A stretch of 63,696 nt of DNA, filler included, from Ministeria vibrans ATCC 50519 (GCA_943704425.1; 11 parts of 11 records of this genome joined end to end with filler, not necessarily neighbours in it), one strand, 5' to 3'. Counted from the whole stretch's first letter, positions 25,987 through 36,891 are shown. The notes: generated by a model from the letters alone, not told the origin. A program made the numbers and translations.

Positions 25987-27487
25987 CCAGAGCCCTTCTG
26001 GCGAAACGGCGCACCAAGCGATCCAGGCACTGAAGTGCTTGCACTGTGAAAGGCCTCAAACGACCGTGAAAGTTGAGAAGTGGAGTGATCAGCGAGCGGT
26101 AGCACAGGGTCCATTGTGCCCTTGTCAGCCCCACTCGTTGCATCCGTCCCAGTCGCTCCGTCAGGGTCTTACTGATAGCTTCCAGCTGGTGCTCCGTGCG
26201 CCTGTCCGCAGACAAAGTGTATCCGAGGTGGCGTATTGTGTCTACCCGTGGGACACGCCACGGCCCCAGCAGCCTATGACAGTCCTCGCTTGCCGTCTTG
26301 CTCTTGGGGCCAAAGACCGTGTACGTTGACTTCTTTTCGTTGATTGTCATTCCCGTGTCTTTTGTGAACTGACGGATTACCCCAGCAAGGTAGTTCGCAC
26401 CGTCCGCCGTGGCTGTGACCGTAGTTACATCGTCCGCGTACGAGAGCGCATCTACCCTCGCTCCTGGCGTCACAAGGTCCATTAGCAGCGGACCCTCGCA
26501 CTCGCGGCAGTTCAACTCCTGTATAAGAGGGTCTATCACTGCGGCAAAGACGAGCGGTCCAAGCACACTGCCTTGTCTTACACCTGTTCGGATCAGGAGT
26601 GGTCCCGAGTGGAACGAGGCGCCGGGAAGCCTAACAGTCGCTTCCATTCCCTGGTAGAAGCTTGTCAACAAGCGTGCCCAAGTTGTGGGCAGGCCAAGTC
26701 TCACAAGTGCAGGTTGTATGAGAGCATGTTGTATCTTGTCGAAGCACTTGGCTACGTCATAGCAAACCACATGCGCCTCCGCACCATCGCGGAGCGACTC
26801 AAGGCGAGTGTCAATCTGATCCAGTAACGTGGCCGTGACAGTGGCGACCCCCGCCCCACCTGCACCCGTATACACCCCTTGTAGCGGATGAAGCCTCCTC
26901 ATCACGTGTGGTCCGACTCGTTTTTTGACCAGCTTCTCAAAGATCTTGCACAGCGTGTTCAGCAATGTGATGGATCGTAGATTCGCAAGGTCATTGGGAA
27001 GTGCAGTGTCCGACTTAGGTATAAGCCACAGCACGCCAACCTTGAAACTCCTTGGTACCCTCGACAATGCTAAACAGGCGTTGGCCAGCTCAGCGACCCA
27101 CTGTGCCACTTCCGTGGCAGCCATCGCCCATGCCTCGTAGTGGAGGCCATCTGGACCGGGTGCCTTGTTGGTGGGCGTGTGACGAAGGACTGCGAGTGCC
27201 TCTTCTTCTGAGAAACTGGCATTGGCGCTCCCCGTCTCACCGTCGTCCCTCGCACCGCCGTACCAAGTCGTAAGCTCCTGCGCAGTCAGTTGCCTCTCGT
27301 CGCCATAGAGTCGTTGGAAATGCACTCGAGCTGCCTCCACAGTCGCCCTCTTGCCAACCACGAGTGTCCTCTGGCCACCAGTCACTCCTGGATCGGTGAT
27401 TATAGAGTCCCCCGTGCTCATTCCTGCCGAAGCCCCTCCTTTAACCAGCTTGAAGAATGCCTTCGTGCCCGAGATAGGATTCTCCCA
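25987..27487 (-). mobile_element. Non-LTR retrotransposon (LINE) reverse transcriptase; 5'-truncated, 3' end cut by contig edge
   Basis: KAPGPDG, RSITLLNTLCKIF, YDVAKCFDKIQH, GVRQGSVLGPLVF, LSYADD, GMTINEKKS and RHLG in an intronless open frame. Confidence 0.93.
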
Positions 27488-28110: not shown

Positions 28111-28851
28111 CTACTGTATTCCTATCCTGGTGTCTTCAGTTGCTTTGGTACAAAATTGCAAAATCCCCTCCGCTGATGTCTTTCGCTCCGCACTACAGTC
28201 GACCAACCAGTCATCCATCGTCAACGGCACGTCGTCAAGAGAAACATCCAACAGGTGCGTCAGGGATACGTGCAGCTTTCGTGCGTCCACCCGCAAACGA
28301 TTCCAAGTAAACAATGTTCCCGAGCGAGCGGGGGGACCGTCAGAGCCAAATGTGAATCCCACAAGCACGTCAGAGTCAGCCGCAATGGCTTTGTTCCGCG
28401 CATGAAATCCATCGTGGACGCACACTCTGGCTCCAATCGCCATTGCCATTTCCAGCTGCAAAACAGATTTCTCGCCCAACTGCGACGCAAACTGTGCATG
28501 CAGTCTAGCCCCCACCACGGCACTCTGCGAAGCCCCCGGGCGACATGGGACACCCACAACAGCCGGGAGAGAGTCGGGGAGGTGCAAGGTAAGCGAGCCA
28601 ATGTCTTCGCTCAGGAACAGCGCAACGGGAACATGGTCTGCCCATGCCGCACCCCCGCTCACAAGGAGAACGTCGGATAGGTCACAGTGGAGGTAGTGGA
28701 GAAGGATCGCCTTGCAAGCGCAAACCATTTTATGAAACAACAGTTTCGTCAAACGCTTATCGCCATTCCGGCCAGATGTACCAACAATGCCAACACGGGT
28801 CACATGTGTACCTCTGGTACTACTTAAGCCCCGGCGAGGGAACTTGGGCAT
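28111..28851 (-). CDS. Intronless SLOG-superfamily (DprA/YspA-like fold) protein
   Basis: VGIVGTSGR, LVSGGAAWADHV, GFHARNKAIA..SDVLVGF and SGTLFTW match the SLOG pattern (G-x-R, SGGA-x-G/W-AD, RN, GGT). Confidence 0.7.
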   Translation of the reverse strand: MPKFPRRGLSSTRGTHVTRVGIVGTSGRNGDKRLTKLLFHKMVCACKAILLHYLHCDLSDVLLVSGGAAWADHVPVALFLSEDIGSLTLHLPDSLPAVVGVPCRPGASQSAVVGARLHAQFASQLGEKSVLQLEMAMAIGARVCVHDGFHARNKAIAADSDVLVGFTFGSDGPPARSGTLFTWNRLRVDARKLHVSLTHLLDVSLDDVPLTMDDWLVDCSAERKTSAEGILQFCTKATEDTRIGIQ

Positions 28852-29122
28852 TGCGATGAAAAAAAGTCTTATGAGTAATGAGTTGTGACGCAGTGACTGA
28901 TCTCTCTCTACTCTTCCCGTGAATCCCAGCAGCCGCCTAATTTACAAGACATAGGCCAATTAAGGCCATCTTGCATACCTTTGCGTTTCTAAACCTTTTG
29001 CCGGTTCATCTTTGATGTATTTTCATATGTGTTTCATATTGCGCTTTGTCGAATCGCTGTCGAATAATAAGTCCCTAACGGCCCAACGTAAGTTTCTTAT
29101 ATTAATTTTTTATTTATTTCAC

Positions 29123-29515
29123 ATGCTGACGCGTGCAATGTCGTCTGTGCCACCCACACTGGTCTCTGCGGCCACCAGAGCGGCCTGGGGGCGTCTGAAT
29201 CTGCTTGTGCTGGACGACCACGAAGGGATCCTTGGTCGCTCGCCGGGCGTCGCACAGATGAAGGCGCTCTGCGACACCACCCGCATCCTTGCAAACACCC
29301 CCCTGGCAAGCGTCCCCAACGCCGAGCTGGCGGATATTGATGTGATTTTTGCGTTGAGAGAGCGAACTCGCTTCAGCAAAGAGGTCTTTGCCAGATTGCC
29401 CTCTCTCCGTCTTCTGCTGCAATCTGGTGGCCATGCGTACCACGTCGACGTCGAGGGTGCCACCCAGCATGGTGTGCAGATTGTGCTTGGACGCGGGGCG
29501 CAGGTACCGAATCAC

Positions 29516-29613
<98 letters not shown>

Positions 29614-30561
29614 AGTGATAGAGAAGTGATATGATGTGATGCGATATGATATGTACTGTGCCAACACGCACTCTTGGTTGTCACGTCAGGAGCCATTGCG
29701 CGCTGTTCCCGAGCTCGTCTTCAACCTAATGACAGGGTGTCTGCGCGACATGAAGACAGTTCACCACGAGATGACAAACGGTGCATGGAACCCGACCATT
29801 GGCCGAACGCTTGCTGGTAAGGCGAGAGCTCGTGGAGAGTAGAGCGCGCGTCAAATTTAACACGGATTTGCTCTCCCAGGACGCACTATGGGTCTTCTTG
29901 GGGCTGGTCGTCACGGAGGACGCGTTGCCACGATAGCAAAAGCGTTTGGGATGAAGGTGCGTCATCGCTGGACTCCAATTGAAATTTATTCTCTCTCTTG
30001 GTTTGTTTGCTTTCTGCGAAGGTAATTGCGTGGGACCGCGGCTTGTGCGATCGGCCAACTGCCGACGGGGACATACCGCGTTTTCCAATGGAGCAGCTTC
30101 TCGCGCAGTCGGATGTCGTCTCAATCCACTTGAAACTGTCGGACGAGTCGCGGAATCTTATTGACGCAGAGAAACTCGCGCAAATGAAACGCAACTCGAT
30201 CCTCATCAATACATCGCGCGGAGCCATTGTCGACGAGAAAGCCCTTGCTGATGCTCTCGCCGACCCCTCGGCACCCCTCTCTGCTGCCGGCCTCGATGTG
30301 TTCCACACAGAGCCGCTTCCGGCCGACTCCCCTCTGCGCTCTCTTCCAAATGCTCTCATTACACCCCACATTGGTACGCTCAGTTTGTTTGTTGGTGTTG
30401 TCCGTCTCTCTCTCTGTGTGTAACTGGCTTACTTCTTTTTGAATTTTGTAGGATTTCTGACCGAAGAGGTTTTTATGGAGTTTGCGCAGATTGCGGCGAA
30501 CCAACTAAAAGCTGTGCTGGAGGGGACTCTTCCGCCCTCAGATATTCTCAACCCTATGTAA
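29123..30561 (+). CDS. D-isomer-specific 2-hydroxyacid dehydrogenase, multi-exon
   Basis: RERT, GLLGAGRHG, SDVVSIHL, LINTSRGAIVDE, AAGLDVFHTEPL and ITPHIG. Confidence 0.92.
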
Positions 30562-31052
30562 CAATAATAATAACCCCGACAATAAGACGTACATTATTAT
30601 TACGATTAAAATTATTATTCATTTTTCCAAAACTCCCACAAAGGGAGAAAGAGAGAGTAGTAGTAGTTGAAAAAAAAACAGGGTGGATCGTTCCGAGGGT
30701 GAACCACTGGATAGCGCATTCCTTGGTTTGTAGCAGAGAAGACTACTCACTTTCATTGCACTCAACACAACCAAGATGCGCAATAATATTAATAGTAAAA
30801 TTTAACACAAATCAATTGTTTTTGAGGGGTGTCAACCTTCGCAACTTGAAGTAGTCGACAGACTGAAATTTGCATTTTAATAACAATAATAGCAAACTAG
30901 AAATGAGATGACGAAGATGCATTACACAATGAAACAACGAAAACACATTGGCATGAGCAACAAAACAAACCTAAAAATGAGATGAAGATGGATTGCAAAA
31001 TGAAACAATAAAAACACATTGGCAGGAGCAACAAAACCAACAGTAATATTTA

Positions 31053-34000
31053 TTACAAAAGAAAGGCCCCTTCGTCATCGTCAGAAGAGAGTTGGAGCGT
31101 CTCAATGGGCGCAAACATGCGCACTGTCTTTCCTCTGGCGCTCTCTCCTTCTCCCTCCTCCTCGTCTTCCTCCCGTTCCCGCTTCACTCCTCCTCCCGTA
31201 TGCTCCTGATACAATCGTCCCCTTGCCTGCACCTGCAGCTCCCGGCTGGGTCCCGCGCCTCCTTGTCCCTCACCATTATTATCATTCTTCTTCTCCTCCT
31301 CCTCCTCCTCCTTCACTCGCTTCCCCTTCCCCTTTCGCGGTGTCTTCCCCTTCGCCGCACTCATCACACCAGCCCCTTCACCCTTCCCTCCCTCCTCCTC
31401 GTCTTCCTCCTCCTCCCCCCTCTCCCTCTTCACTCCCTTAGTCCTCTGTGGTCCTTTCCCCTTCCGCGGACTCATCAAATTTCCTTTCCGCGGACTCAAC
31501 AAACTCCGTTTCACCGGGCTCATCACCACCGACACATCCGCATCCGTTTCATCCACTTCCTCTTCTCCTTCCTCTCCCACAAACTCCTCTTCTCCCTCCT
31601 CATCCTCCTCCTCCCCCTCCCCTCCTCCCACCTCTTTTTCCCGTCGGATCACCTCACTCTGCCACTCACTCATTTCTCTCCCGTCCATCAACTCACCACT
31701 CTCAATCTCACGTAATACCTAACAAACAAAAAAATATTAGTACCAAAAGATTTCCCCATCTCTCTCTTTCTCTTACGCTCGGGTGCCATACGCGCAGCGG
31801 CACAACGGTCCATCCGGCCTTTTGCGCCAGAATGTCGCGCGGAATCAACCGATAGAGCTCACGCGCATTAAGACGAAGATCCGCCGCAGAGTCACACACC
31901 ACTGCAACGTTGTCAAGACCCTCTGCGCGATCCACCAGCGCCACTCCCAGTCGAAAGCGACTCGAACCCACACGCACAGAGCCTTCTCCGGCAAACAATC
32001 GTCCACGAACCTCACTGGCAAAAGTACGCGCGCTCTGCTCTTCACGCGTCACTCGTCCCAGCCGCTCACCCCCGGCACTTGTTGTACCCGCACTCGCCGC
32101 CTCAAAGACATGTCGACAGAAGCGCGCAAAGGCAGCCTTGCCCGCACTTGCACTGTTCGTCTTTGTACCCGTCTTCTTCCTGTCCCCGCCACCACCCCCG
32201 CCACTCGGCACAGGCATCGTCGGATGATAGATCACTTGCATCGTCTCCTTGGCCCGCGACACACCCACATTGAGTCGTCGGTCGCCGTGGGCGCGTGCCA
32301 GCGTTGAATACCGGTCGGTCGCCGACGCAGGCGACTTGGACAGAATCAGCGACAGAAGAATCTCGCGCCGCTCCTCCCCTTGCACATGGTCAATTGAATC
32401 CACAAAAATGCTCTCGTCTGCCTCCATGTGCGTCTCACCCGTCCTCTCAAAGCGTCGCGTCCCCTCAGTCTCCCGCAGTCCCGCCAGACCACGCGCTCGC
32501 AACAGCGCACAAATCAACTTGGCCTGTAGCTCATTGAGCGTCACCACTGCAATCGAGAGTGATCGTGTGCAGTCCGTCACTGCGCGCACGAGCTCCGCCA
32601 CAACATACTCCGCCTGTCCCACATTCACCAAGCCCGACGTCCCAGGCGCATCCGGCCACACTGTGCGTACCTCCTGCAAGTCCTCATCCCGACTTAGACT
32701 CAACATGGGCGCATTGTCAAGGGCAACAGGAACAAACCCGCGCCGGACTTGCTGCTGCTGCTGCTGACAGTCCGACGGCGACGTAAACGTCCACAGCGTG
32801 CCCAGATAAAAGTAATCGTTGTTGAACTCAATGAGAGACTGCGACGCACTCCGATAGTGCCAGCACAACTGCAACACAGGCAGCTGCACCCGGTGCGACA
32901 TGGTCTCCTCCAGAATACTCACAGTCTGCTGCTGCTGCGGTTGCGACTGCTGTGACGCAACCTCCTCATCGACCACCTCCGCCTTCACGTTGCTCGTGCT
33001 GTCCGTCGGCAGTTGCTTCTCGTCGCCCACAATGATGGACGCATCCGCCCGACCGATAGCACCAAGCATGTCGGCAACCGCCAACTGTGATGCTTCGTCC
33101 ACAAGCAGTCGAGCAAAGAAAAGTCGGCCGTCGGGCGAGACCACAGGCAGCGTAGCGGCATTCTGAGGTGTCAGCGCAAGCACGGGGGACAGCGACAGCC
33201 ACCCCGCGAGCATCTGGTCGCGTGGCGTCTCCTTCAAAATGTCACCCAGTAGCTTCTTCTTGCGCTCCGCCGTTTGTCCGTGCTCCACTGCCTTGGCAAA
33301 CATCCGCCCAACAAGTGTCTCGCGTGACGTGAGCACACGAAACACGCGTCGCGCGTGCCACAGTAGCAACAGTACACGACACACTCGCTGCTTGCGCTGA
33401 TCACATGCAATAAACCGCTCAATGTCCGTCTCGACACTCGCCAACTCGCCACACTGTTGCAGTTCGCGACGCACAAACTCTCGCGTCAACATCACGTCGT
33501 ACAGCTCCGCTCGCTCACGCACAACACGTACATCTACTGTGGCACAACCGCAAAAGAACGGATCACCAAAAAAATCACGCTTAAAGCCACGACTGACACT
33601 CTCAGCGCCCATCAGATCAAGCATGTACTGCGACATGTCACGCAGCTGCTCCACGGCCAGCGTCACCCCAAGTCGCCGCTGTTGTTGCTCTGCCTCGCCC
33701 GCACGCGCTATCCGCTCTCCAATGTGCCTCACATCCTCGGACGAGTACGAGTGTGTCGTCTCGCAAGACACACTTGAGAACATCCGTCGATGCCCAATCA
33801 ACACTGCAGTGAGCATTTCAAACAGCGTGCGCCCTTGCGTATCCCCTTCCACGCGTGTGTGCAGTCGCTTGCGCACCGTCCACACTCGCATCTCCAACAT
33901 AAGCTCCTCCTCCTCCAGTCGCGTCGCTTCTTCCTCCAAGCTCGCCACCGCCGTTTCCAGTCGCGCCAGCACCGCACCTGCCGCCTCCTGCGCATTCGGG

Positions 34001-36713
34001 GCGTTCAACACACCCTCTCTCAAGTGCTTTTCCAGTTCGCACACGAGATCGTCCATTTTGGTCGGGTCCGTCTGCGCTCGTCCACTTGAACCGCCACAGA
34101 TCAACGGTAGCTTCTTTTGCAGCAGAGGTTTCAGCCATGGTTCGCGCGCCAGCGCCGGCACAAGCTCGTCAAGCAGCGACACACTCTCGCTCACCGTACG
34201 GTTCAGTCGACCCATGAACGGCCGCAGCGAAGACTCTGTGCGGGCGACAAACAGCAATGGACGCGTGCCATCGGTCAACAGCAAGTGACACACAATGTTC
34301 ACAAGCGTTTGTGTCTTGCCCGTCCCCGGCGGACCCCTCAACACAAATGAGCTGCTCTCCGTTGCCCGTCGCACCGCACGCTCCTGCGTCGAATCGGCAC
34401 TCAGAATCAAACGAAGTCGGTGGTCCGTCATTGCCACAGTGGGTGCCACGCCGGCGTTGTTGTTGTCGACGTTCTGGTTGTGGTGAGGACGACGCGCGTC
34501 CCCGTCGCTACGACCAACAAGACACTGGAACAGTGGGCTGCACCGTCGCATAGCAAACGCATTCAACTGGAGGTCCAGGTATGACCACAGGTGCGCGTCG
34601 TTGGTGTTGGATCGTGCCAACTTCACACGCACCAACGACAGCCAAGTTGTAGCAGCGCCACCCTCACCCTCTTGTCGTCGTCCTTTGTACAGTGCCGACA
34701 CGGCCGCCTTGACATGTACCACCGGCACTGGGTCAAGCTGCACAAAAGTCGTTGGATCCCACACCAGCACCGTCTGCCACTCGGGAACGCGACTCGCACG
34801 CAAGCAAAGCATATTGCCGCCCTTCTTGTCCACATCAAGTGTCACCGCCATCAGCAGAGCCGCACCACTAGCCGCGTCGCCAATACGCAAAAAGAGATCC
34901 TTGCTCTCCACGAGCGCCGTGTACACCGTGTGTCGCTTGCGCGCAACAGTCGGCTTTTCGAATTTTTGCGGCTGATCACGAGTCGGATCGAACAGCAACT
35001 GTGGCATCGCGTCTCCATTCCACAATCGTCGTTGATACACTCGTCCTGGCCTTGCCACGGCTGCACAAGCCTTCAACTCCACAGGATCACCCCTTTGCAG
35101 CACCTGAATAGTCTCCACCGCCACAGCAACACCACTCGCACACGTGTGTAGCGTTGCCGTCACCATCTTGGGCCAGACCTTCTCAACGGCTCCACGAAAA
35201 CGTACCAAATGCTTTGCGTACGCCATCGACCGGCCACACACTTGAGCCTTGAGCGGCGCAAACGCTGCGACAGCCGCAGTAATCGCATCGCCACCGCCGC
35301 CGTCGTCGTGGTCGCCATTGGCTGCCGCCACAACATCCAGTTGGCGTCGCACCAGTCGCACTTGTTGCAACGGACGCACACCACACATCTGAGCAGTGCG
35401 AATGTCACACAGGAGACGGATGGGCCCACCCTCGTGTCCAAACCACTCGGCAGCATCGCGCTCGCTCAGCGGCCCCTTGTCCAGTGGAAGCACAATCGGG
35501 CGCCACTGGCCCACGCGCCACGTTGCCACACGTAGCACATTCGTTTCGGCATCACACACAATTGCAGGTGCCGCATCCGTTTCCTGCACAATGCGCAGAG
35601 CATGGGAGAACACTGAGCTAAAGACCTTGTCCATTGGCAAAAGATAATGCGCCAACAGCATCGCATCGTCGCCGCCAAGTCGTGCACCTACCAAACGACA
35701 CTCGTGAGGTGTTGCCTCGAGAACCCGATCACACTTGACCAGGACCGATCCAGTCGCGCACACACGATGAAGCCCCTTCCATGCAAGTTCCACATGAACA
35801 TCGCCACTTGCATCGCGCGAATGCGACGCAACAAACAGCGCGTTGACCACGCGCGCTTCAGGATCGACATTGACCTCTTGAGACCTCCTTCTCCCAACCA
35901 ACACGGTGCGCTCCTCCACCAAAGTCACACGCTCGTTGTCGTCCGCAACGTACCAGCTCTTCCACACACACTCCACATTTTCGTCAGCACCCGACAGTTC
36001 GCAGTGCCACGTCTCGGGCAGTACCAGAGTTGCATGGATGGTGGCATACTCTCCCGCATGTGCTAACACACCAAACGTTGTCTGCGTCGCACTTGCATAG
36101 TTCACATGTACATCGAGTATCGGCACCACACCCGTGGTTGCACCGCTAGTCACCGCTGACAGAAGTGGCTCCGTCTTAAACTCTTTCTCCGCCTCAACAA
36201 AGCTCCAGCGCCCATCGTCCCGATGGGTCTCGGCTGCGGCCGCGCGAGTTTGCACAACTAATTGACGATGAATGTGCTTCCGTGCATACTCTAGTGCCTC
36301 TACGTCACTCCACTCACGTCCCGTGTTGCACGCCCACACCCGAAAGTAATACCCGGTCGCTGGCTCAAGATGTCGTGCGGTTGTTGCAAGCGTGCCCTCC
36401 GTGGCTCGCACCACACCATCCCATGCCGACCTGCGACGATCCTCACGCTTCTTTTGCACCCTCACATAGTACCATTGCACTCGCGCACCACCCGTAAACT
36501 CGGGTGCCCTCCAGCACGCTCGTGACCTGTGGCTTCCCGCCACCACCTCAATCCCACTGCAAATATAGAAAAAAAGATATTCTTCAGTGTGCCCAGGATC
36601 CTCGTAACACCCACTTACCTTGGACTTCCGGGCGCCCCTGGTGGCGTTCGCGTCACGCAAACCGCCTCTTCACTCCGACCCACTGTGTTCTCGGCAAACA
36701 CTCGAATGATAAC
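31053..36713 (-). CDS. FN3 + DUF4011-like + SF1 helicase (AAA_11/AAA_12) + Vsr/DUF559-like domain + acidic tail (Hhe-like); 5'-partial
   Basis: Helicase motifs ADSTQERAV...GPPGTGKTQT, VDEASQL, VGDEKQL, LCWHYRS, HVQGEER and RRLNVGVSRAK. C-terminal VGSSRFRLGVALVD...VVCD...AGWTVV. N-terminal FN3 (LEPATGYYFRVWACN). Intron 31719-31776 joins the acidic last exon. Confidence 0.85.
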
Positions 36714-36729
36714 CTATTTTAAACAATTA

Positions 36730-36765
<36 letters not shown>

Positions 36766-36891
36766 GGTATTATGACGTTTGAGTGGGGGGGNNNNNNNNN
36801 NNNNNNNNNNNNNNNNNNNNNNNNNNNNNNNNNNNTTAATTAATTAANNNNNNNNNNNNNNNNNNNNNNNNNNNNNNNNNNNNNNNNNNNN

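Follow-up and report, generated by a model that had tools for sequence, protein, structure and literature searches.

The bacterial anti-phage system Hhe is described as a single gene encoding both a helicase and nuclease domains (PMC11482910), and a predicted Hhe gene carries the annotation DUF4011 protein (PMC11232893). The type protein of the MTES_1575 family combines a HEPN domain, a transglutaminase, a superfamily 1 (SF1) helicase, a Vsr restriction endonuclease and two winged helix-turn-helix (wHTH) domains (PMC3710099), and HEPN is also listed as part of Gao_Hhe (10.1101/2024.10.26.620412). Not every bacterial DUF4011 protein is a mobile defence gene, because the DUF4011 gene of P. aeruginosa is a conserved core gene flanking a defence hotspot (10.1101/2022.11.11.516204). 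The eukaryotic record of Hhe-type helicase–nuclease systems found in the literature is a single list, that of the DefenseFinder matches of Gao_Hhe in EukProt genomes, where they were among the least frequent systems and were omitted from the figure (10.1101/2023.09.13.557551). The gene described here is a helicase gene on the minus strand (31053–36713) of a 63,696-nt stretch of DNA from Ministeria vibrans ATCC 50519. The whole stretch is called the window, and the 10.8-kb part of it that holds the helicase gene is called the piece. The best overall explanation of the gene, and in our judgement a probable one, is an expressed eukaryotic gene derived from a bacterial family, with a dead nuclease, and belonging to an old eukaryotic clade.

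The gene was recognized from an uninterrupted open reading frame (ORF) of 1,650 codons on the minus strand (36660–31708). RNA-derived contigs of three runs, X6 and X8 under one organism label and X13 under another, were examined over 31000–36791. Contigs X6 and X8 have a joint at 36556/36619 that skips 62 nt, and all three contigs skip the 58 nt at 31719–31776 (cut +3); both skipped segments read CT..AC on the plus strand. The DNA contig X1 is unspliced and collinear with the window, retaining both introns. On the plus strand a loose run of 23 T terminates contig X8 at 31019, i.e. a poly(A) on the minus strand. Because both introns are GT–AG introns spliced in the RNA and the transcript has a poly(A) end, the gene is a genuine nuclear gene, expressed in a marine eukaryote. 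Its features, listed from the 5' end, are the following:

36619..36713, minus strand: upstream coding exon with the last strands of an FN3-like (fibronectin type III) domain (...RVFAENTVGRSEEAVCVTRTPPGAPGSP), from the reading frame, the AG acceptor and RNA contigs X6/X8.
36557..36618, minus strand: AT-rich GT–AG intron of 62 nt, from the RNA joint in X6 and X8.
31777..36556, minus strand: main exon of 4,780 nt with FN3, orphan region, helicase and nuclease-like tail, from the ORF and the RNA joints.
36292..36556, minus strand: FN3-like domain, ORF residues ~36–123, from Pfam fn3 (E 8.2e-5, 23.2 bits).
34711..35271, minus strand: degenerate DUF4011-like region, residues ~464–650 (DLFLRIG588, ALLMAVTL601), from profile–profile comparison.
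32203..34443, minus strand: SF1 (UPF1-like, AAA_11/AAA_12) helicase core, residues 740–1486, from Pfam and the family profile.
31777..32040, minus strand: remnant of a Vsr-type (MTES_1575-like) restriction-endonuclease fold, residues 1541–1628, from the tail profile.
31945..31947, minus strand: codon of Gly1572, which takes the place of the first catalytic Asp of the family, from column counts.
31719..31776, minus strand: GT–AG intron of 58 nt within the nuclease-like domain, from RNA contigs X6, X8 and X13.
31053..31718, minus strand: last coding exon with an acidic/basic low-complexity tail of 221 amino acids (aa) and the stop codon at 31053–31055, from translation and frame.
31019..31052, minus strand: 3' untranslated region and poly(A) addition site, from RNA contig X8.

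Removal of the 62-nt intron links the upstream FN3 exon in frame to the start of the main exon, where a second FN3-like domain is present. Removal of the 58-nt intron bypasses the stop of the ORF at 31708–31710, and the frame runs on into the last exon of 221 codons. The core had been described as a single exon of about 4.8 kb when the sequence was first read, and it is indeed one exon, its 4,780 nt lying between two introns that are both spliced in the RNA contigs. Contigs X6 and X8 span 36619–36715, and since the longest RNA contig (X8, record 15; 7.1 kb) extends 1,981 nt past the piece in the 5' direction, the window does not include the true N-terminus, and further 5' exons are situated beyond the edge of the piece. 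The coding content within the piece is at least 1,846 codons, with up to ~660 additional ones possible further 5'. The stretch with the helicase gene was also found in runs labelled algae and seawater metagenomes. Five single-base differences were present between the runs, three synonymous and two conservative, which are too few for measuring selection. The exons were translated and searched one by one, and the searches reported below thus concern single exons and not the joined protein.

The SF1 motifs of the helicase are complete: ADSTQ755, GPPGTGKT776, VDEASQ1187, GDEKQLP1212, WHYRS1267, VDSIDHVQGEER1420 and NVGVSRA1464. The region of motif I stands in the family-specific context ADSxQ...FVLxGPPGTGKxQTxxN, and the sequence-only reading, which had reported all motifs as intact within this context, is borne out by the ORF. 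Between motifs Ia and II the core has an insertion of ~340 aa (residues 810–1147). For the helicase Pfam reported only the generic domains AAA_11 (3.6e-11) and AAA_12 (6.2e-16). A word-indexed search of 5.8 billion clustered proteins gave as best matches bacterial proteins of ~2,000 aa. According to precomputed Pfam content, all 120 matches listed carry PF13087/PF13086, and nearly all carry PF13195 and PF18741. In the best bacterial relatives DUF3320 is frequent beside DUF4011, AAA_11/12 and MTES_1575, with many members having no DUF3320, and the genes around one top match are compactly arranged in the bacterial manner. When 1.8 billion representatives were searched exhaustively with phmmer, none was closer, the top 150 matches scoring 127–158 bits. 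A family hidden Markov model (HMM) built from 40 of the bacterial best-match proteins scored 280 bits against the ORF (E 1.5e-87), with residues 740–807 and 941–1628 aligned. Judged by these profile matches, the bacterial family DUF4011 / SF1 helicase / MTES_1575, which includes Hhe, is the source of both the helicase and the nuclease part.

In the alignment to the family HMM the Vsr-type tail (residues 1541–1628) falls on the bacterial MTES_1575 region, straight after motif VI. A tail-only HMM and column counts were made from 275 bacterial tails. The tail HMM scored about 20–27 bits on the ORF, the maximum of 2,000 shuffles being 9.6 bits, and the Vsr-like tail proposed behind the helicase was thereby recovered, though not by Pfam, which at E up to 10 found neither MTES_1575 nor DUF559 in the ORF and its sub-regions. 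The ORF keeps the G, S, F, R, D, GW and RVW positions that are conserved in the family. The first catalytic Asp, present in 97% of the 275 bacterial tails (RvD), is replaced by Gly1572 (RLG), as had been noticed from the sequence. The second replacement claimed there, VVCDS as the loss of a key acidic residue, did not hold: the Asp of the '..DG' motif, conserved in 97%, is retained as Asp1590, and just a Glu occurring in 35% of the members is missing. The D-R-D motif (89, 98 and 81% in bacterial tails) is degenerate, and Asp1590 is the only catalytic acidic residue kept. Right after the 58-nt intron VLREIE follows the family's W-L-R-D-R-E positions (WLRDRE), and because of this match the intron would lie inside the acquired domain and would have been gained after the transfer.

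AlphaFold2 modelling of the tail with 50 aligned rows gave a predicted local distance difference test (pLDDT) value of 51, MAFFT having put the first ~16 residues on helicase motifs, and a Foldseek search of the model against the PDB returned only matches with E ≥ 0.6. The fold of the tail was therefore assigned from sequence profiles exclusively. The nuclease looks dead, as had been suggested earlier: the first Asp is lost from the ORF and also from all its eukaryotic relatives, in which the position is Gly, Ala or Ser (11/11, ten large relatives and the contig sequence L014, see below).

The DUF4011 segment expected before the helicase was more difficult to establish. Pfam searches of the ORF and its sub-regions at E up to 10 detected no DUF4011 (PF13195). 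Our own DUF4011 HMM scored −0.4 bits on the ORF, 26 of 500 shuffles being as good. This HMM and hhalign with the ORF alone were non-significant and favoured another weak placement, at residues 660–733. A language-model search of residues 430–745 in the ESM Atlas gave no usable match, and the ORF alone against the profile of its eukaryotic relatives was non-significant. When the profile of the relatives' pre-helicase regions was compared with the bacterial DUF4011 core, the score was 36.4 (P 7.5e-5), and with the ORF included 41.3 (P 1.2e-5), against 8–19 for reversed and column-shuffled controls. In this alignment the DLFLRIG...ALLMAVTL of the ORF sits on LyLalG...APLlLvPV of the family. The profile–profile comparison thus places the segment where the sequence-only reading had put it, but the Pfam, HMM and language-model searches came back blank, and DUF4011 in the ORF is probably a degenerate remnant and not a demonstrated domain.

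The order of the domains is FN3-like repeats, an orphan region of ~600 aa ending in the probable DUF4011 remnant, the SF1 helicase, the Vsr remnant and a disordered acidic/basic tail. On residues ~36–123 Pfam fn3 scored 20.9–23.2 bits (E 8e-5), under the cut-off of 25 bits, and related beta-sandwich families matched as well. The typical FN3 positions W, YY.V and Y.F.V.A.N are readable in the ORF, and the upstream exon holds the end of a further FN3-like domain. The fusion to fibronectin type III domains reported earlier is accordingly matched by an FN3-like domain and an in-frame FN3-like exon upstream, but with a Pfam score just under the cut-off. A homologue search with residues 125–745 found none at E up to 0.01, and an AlphaFold2 model of residues 40–745 made with no alignment was uninformative (pLDDT 32). 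The tail encoded by the last exon has three SP(V/R)K motifs and K/R clusters, and no DUF3320 (wHTH pair) match was found in this exon with Pfam. Tails of this kind, with SP(V/R)K and rich in K/R, suggest a nuclear or chromatin location.

Eukaryotic relatives of the ORF were found among the representatives in the form of large proteins of 2,400–4,100 aa (P0140, P0163 and P0173) with no detectable DUF4011 or MTES_1575, and a further search added P0280–P0286, making ten in all. Their contigs, one of which is 1.84 Mb long, have SART3-like HAT/RRM genes as neighbours, and the proteins carry SAP and ubiquitin domains; the contigs are picoeukaryote-like and look eukaryotic. Three of the genes (L002 250–12396; L003 218–10960; L004 10001–22234) have two helicase units, the upstream one degenerate and the downstream one conserved. 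The SART3-like HAT/RRM gene is the next gene in two of the contigs, a case of conserved synteny. A further sequence, L014 (88–2598, plus strand), on a seawater-metagenome contig, is the C-terminal part of a large-type relative; it includes a Vsr-like remnant (IRIGVAV, LLDD), a Cys-rich stretch, a Ser/Arg-rich region and an acidic end resembling the tail of the ORF's gene.

Over the helicase core the large relatives are 37–39% identical to the ORF, with which they share the motif VI context YST(L/I)A.AHG.R.LNVG, a probable degenerate DUF4011 core and a degenerate Vsr-like tail minus the first Asp; L014 and the ORF's gene also both end in an acidic tail. In contrast to the ORF, the large relatives lack FN3 but have SAP or ubiquitin domains and, upstream, another helicase unit, which is degenerate. 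No similarity to the ORF is seen in their N-terminal regions, and they have diverged more in the tail. Comparison of the tails of the large relatives and L014 with the bacterial tail profile gave a match with a probability of 67% (E 5e-5). A metagenome scan with the ORF alone gave no match, and neither did a scan of viral contigs with the core alignment, so that this collection gave no sign of a giant-virus or phage intermediate.

Among the bacterial branches of the family, Hhe is not the nearest. PADLOC profiles run on the ORF had PDC-S37 at the top (4.6e-57, 191.7 bits) and Hhe in the next place (4.9e-28, 95 bits), so that the Hhe profile, with about half the score, is not the best-fitting defence profile. 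The nearest bacterial relatives of the ORF scored 750–1,125 bits with the PDC-S37 profile vs 300–510 bits with that of Hhe. By profile score the closest bacterial branch is PDC-S37, which in PADLOC is a candidate system and not a validated one, and Hhe is a more distant branch. The sequence-only reading had called the gene a homologue of Hhe, which stands at the level of the superfamily, where the Hhe profile matches, but not for the nearest branch. Hhe differs from the ORF also in that the nuclease of the ORF is predicted to be inactive and that no HEPN was found in the available sequence: among the Pfam matches in residues 1–745 there was no HEPN family, the N-terminus of the gene being outside the piece.

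The PDC-S37-type proteins (DUF4011/SF1/MTES_1575/DUF3320) are the best sequence relatives of the ORF, 28–40% identical to it over the helicase, and they have in common with it the motif context, the long insertion between motifs Ia and II, and a Vsr-fold domain immediately after motif VI. The ORF is distinguished from them by being eukaryotic with introns, one of these inside the nuclease domain; by a probably degenerate DUF4011 under the detection of Pfam; by the change of the first catalytic Asp to Gly and a degenerate D-R-D motif; by a disordered acidic/basic tail in place of DUF3320/wHTH; and by N-terminal FN3-like repeats together with ~400 aa that have no detectable relatives.

The intact set of ATPase/helicase motifs, the nuclease fold missing its first Asp and the spliced mRNA form the basis for a possible mechanism. 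The protein may use ATP to translocate along DNA or RNA or to remodel it, its dead nuclease fold may serve as a binding module that does not cut, the SPxK- and K/R-rich tail may direct the protein to chromatin or the nucleus, and the FN3-like repeats may bind partners. The target may be nucleic acid that is foreign or mobile, or else DNA or RNA of the cell itself.

An immune function is the first alternative to be weighed. It would make the protein an innate-immune sensor or effector for viral or foreign nucleic acid, with the function inherited from the bacterial anti-phage system. The gene is fast-evolving and lineage-restricted and has variable domain accretions, which are traits common in immune genes. 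Kinship points the same way, the family including the validated Hhe (PMC11482910, PMC11232893) and the candidate PDC-S37; the latter, however, is only a candidate system, and the core gene of P. aeruginosa, which flanks a defence hotspot, shows that a DUF4011 gene need not be a mobile defence gene (10.1101/2022.11.11.516204). Furthermore, the eukaryotic clade as a whole has an inactivated effector nuclease, and RNA assemblies of ordinary cultures contain the gene. On balance we consider the immune function unlikely, and the role of an intracellular foreign nucleic-acid sensor proposed in the sequence-only reading is a conjecture.

A maximum-likelihood tree of the helicase core was constructed from 81 rows and 418 columns, with a random sample of the matches as the bacterial rows, and was left unrooted. 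It joined the ORF with the ten large relatives, the Shimodaira–Hasegawa-like approximate likelihood ratio test (SH-aLRT) value being 100 under both models. Of the 108 columns conserved in at least 90% of the bacterial rows, the ORF retains 71. The ORF and the large relatives both differ from the bacteria at 16 of these columns and have the same residue at 13, and bacterial rows carry at most two of these 13 derived states. The ORF likely belongs to a eukaryotic clade together with the large picoeukaryote-like proteins, and because of this clade both the transfer and the inactivation of the nuclease would predate the lineage of the ORF. One old acquisition with early nuclease loss is quite probable and is favoured over an independent recent transfer. 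The direction of the transfer, from bacteria to eukaryotes, is argued from distribution, with thousands of diverse bacterial members vs a handful of eukaryotic ones, and not from a rooted tree. For the horizontally acquired helicase of the sequence-only reading, the bacterial-family ancestry was upheld. The gene is probably not a lone recent transfer, the ORF grouping with the large relatives and sharing the 13 derived residues with them.

Several points weigh against an old clade and against the overall explanation given above. The branch of the ORF is very long, 1.2–1.9 changes per column. When the large relatives were left out, the ORF attached beside the bacterial P0122, inside a clade of 35 rows (SH-aLRT 96), and when the ORF was left out, the large relatives attached elsewhere. 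The approximately unbiased (AU) test did not reject the placement of the ORF with P0122 (p 0.27, delta lnL, the log-likelihood difference, 18). The bacterial tail HMM recognized the tail of the ORF with 21 bits, and those of the large relatives with just 2.5–11.6 bits. As the bacterial rows were a random sample and there was no outgroup, the direction of transfer has distribution as its only argument. Pfam reports neither DUF4011 nor MTES_1575, both AlphaFold models are low (pLDDT 32 and 51) and Foldseek was blank, with no fold confirmed, and the piece does not reach the 5' end of the gene. Also ATPase activity, substrate, location and partners are all matters that we infer.

The tree results and the tail scores among these points would fit a private and fairly recent transfer from a bacterium to a eukaryote, with the grouping explained by long-branch attraction and the shared residues by convergent relaxation. 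Such a transfer would have to account for the 13 identical derived residues at columns so strongly conserved in bacteria, for the absence of the first catalytic Asp from all eukaryotic sequences (12/12), for the common motif VI context and for the full SH-aLRT value under both models, and it appears somewhat less credible than even the immune function. The old acquisition is preferred.

Descent within eukaryotes from an ordinary helicase of the UPF1/SETX/IGHMBP2/DNA2 type, with likeness to the bacterial family arising through the SF1 motifs alone, is very improbable. These helicases (UPF1, IGHMBP2, SEN1/SETX) have the superfamily and AAA_11/AAA_12 in common with the ORF, Pfam gives only these generic domains, and solved UPF1-like helicases were the sole matches in the PDB sequence search. 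The matches to the solved UPF1, IGHMBP2 and SEN1 structures, however, reached 18–33 bits and covered short motif stretches only, vs 130–158 bits for the bacterial DUF4011 proteins. A search of PDB sequences with a bacterial family member as the query found no solved structure of the family. Furthermore, the family HMM alignment spans the Q motif and the insertion and continues through the nuclease tail, and the UPF1-like helicases have neither a Vsr-type tail nor the family-specific insertion, both of which are present in the ORF. A canonical UPF1-like helicase was rejected on the gap in scores. A grouping with the canonical eukaryotic helicases, which would have spoken against the sequence-only reading, is not seen, the best relatives of the ORF being bacterial and UPF1, IGHMBP2 and SEN1 scoring at most 33 bits.

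Bacterial contamination or a chimeric assembly, which every named relative being bacterial and the piece being a short contig might suggest, is ruled out for practical purposes by a gene that is spliced and polyadenylated, with both introns in the DNA and spliced in the RNA, a poly(A) end, FN3 exons fused in frame, and a reverse transcriptase and an intron-containing dehydrogenase gene as neighbours.

The reverse-transcriptase ORF (Pfam RVT_1, E 1.7e-23) lies on the minus strand at 25987–27421, where it is cut by the edge of the piece, and is probably a retroelement. A link between it and the helicase was rejected, as each is an ORF of its own and they are separated by 4 kb and two other genes. 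The first of these is a complete ORF of 246 aa at 28111–28851 (minus strand) with no Pfam match. Its nearest ESM Atlas clusters (0.91–0.93) are SLOG/DprA/YpsA-like and mostly from phages and bacteria, and this ORF may add another gene of prokaryotic or viral descent to the 10.8-kb piece. The exons of the other, at 29012–30423 on the plus strand, encode a D-isomer-specific 2-hydroxyacid dehydrogenase (2-Hacid_dh_C, E 1.6e-37), and a (GA)n microsatellite interrupts them at ~29560–29640; the gene is an ordinary intron-containing neighbour on the strand opposite to the helicase gene.

Minor features were detected within and around the helicase gene. A segment of 33 nt in the main exon (35286–35318) recurs with three mismatches in short contigs of three runs, followed there by unrelated sequence, and is a short repeat common to another locus or transcript. 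At 31000–31041 the DNA contig X1 "goes back 42", with 29 other letters between the copies, which marks a small duplication or a variant in length immediately 3' of the poly(A) site. The intron preceding the upstream FN3 exon is filled by an (AAT)n microsatellite (36720–36791), which adjoins the edge of the piece.

The movement of defence genes from bacteria into eukaryotes is being used to trace the origins of innate immunity. A marine protist/picoeukaryote family of large proteins may be imagined that long ago took its helicase from a defence gene of the Hhe/PDC-S37 type, switched the nuclease off, rebuilt the N-termini separately in each lineage (with FN3, or with SAP, ubiquitin and a second helicase) and senses nucleic acid in immunity against the giant viruses and mobile elements of its hosts. 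This is a speculative picture, and we give it less credence than either the immune function or the private recent transfer discussed above; if true, it would mean an undescribed helicase-based immune lineage common to bacteria and eukaryotes. What the analysis offers is a well-documented case of domestication, the immune mechanism being not demonstrated. The small eukaryotic branch of the bacterial helicase–nuclease family is itself undescribed. The gene is a concrete and expressed example of it, with a history that would be legible in the intron gained in the nuclease domain, the Asp lost in all eukaryotic relatives and the new N- and C-terminal modules, and it points to sister proteins in the picoeukaryote-like contigs.

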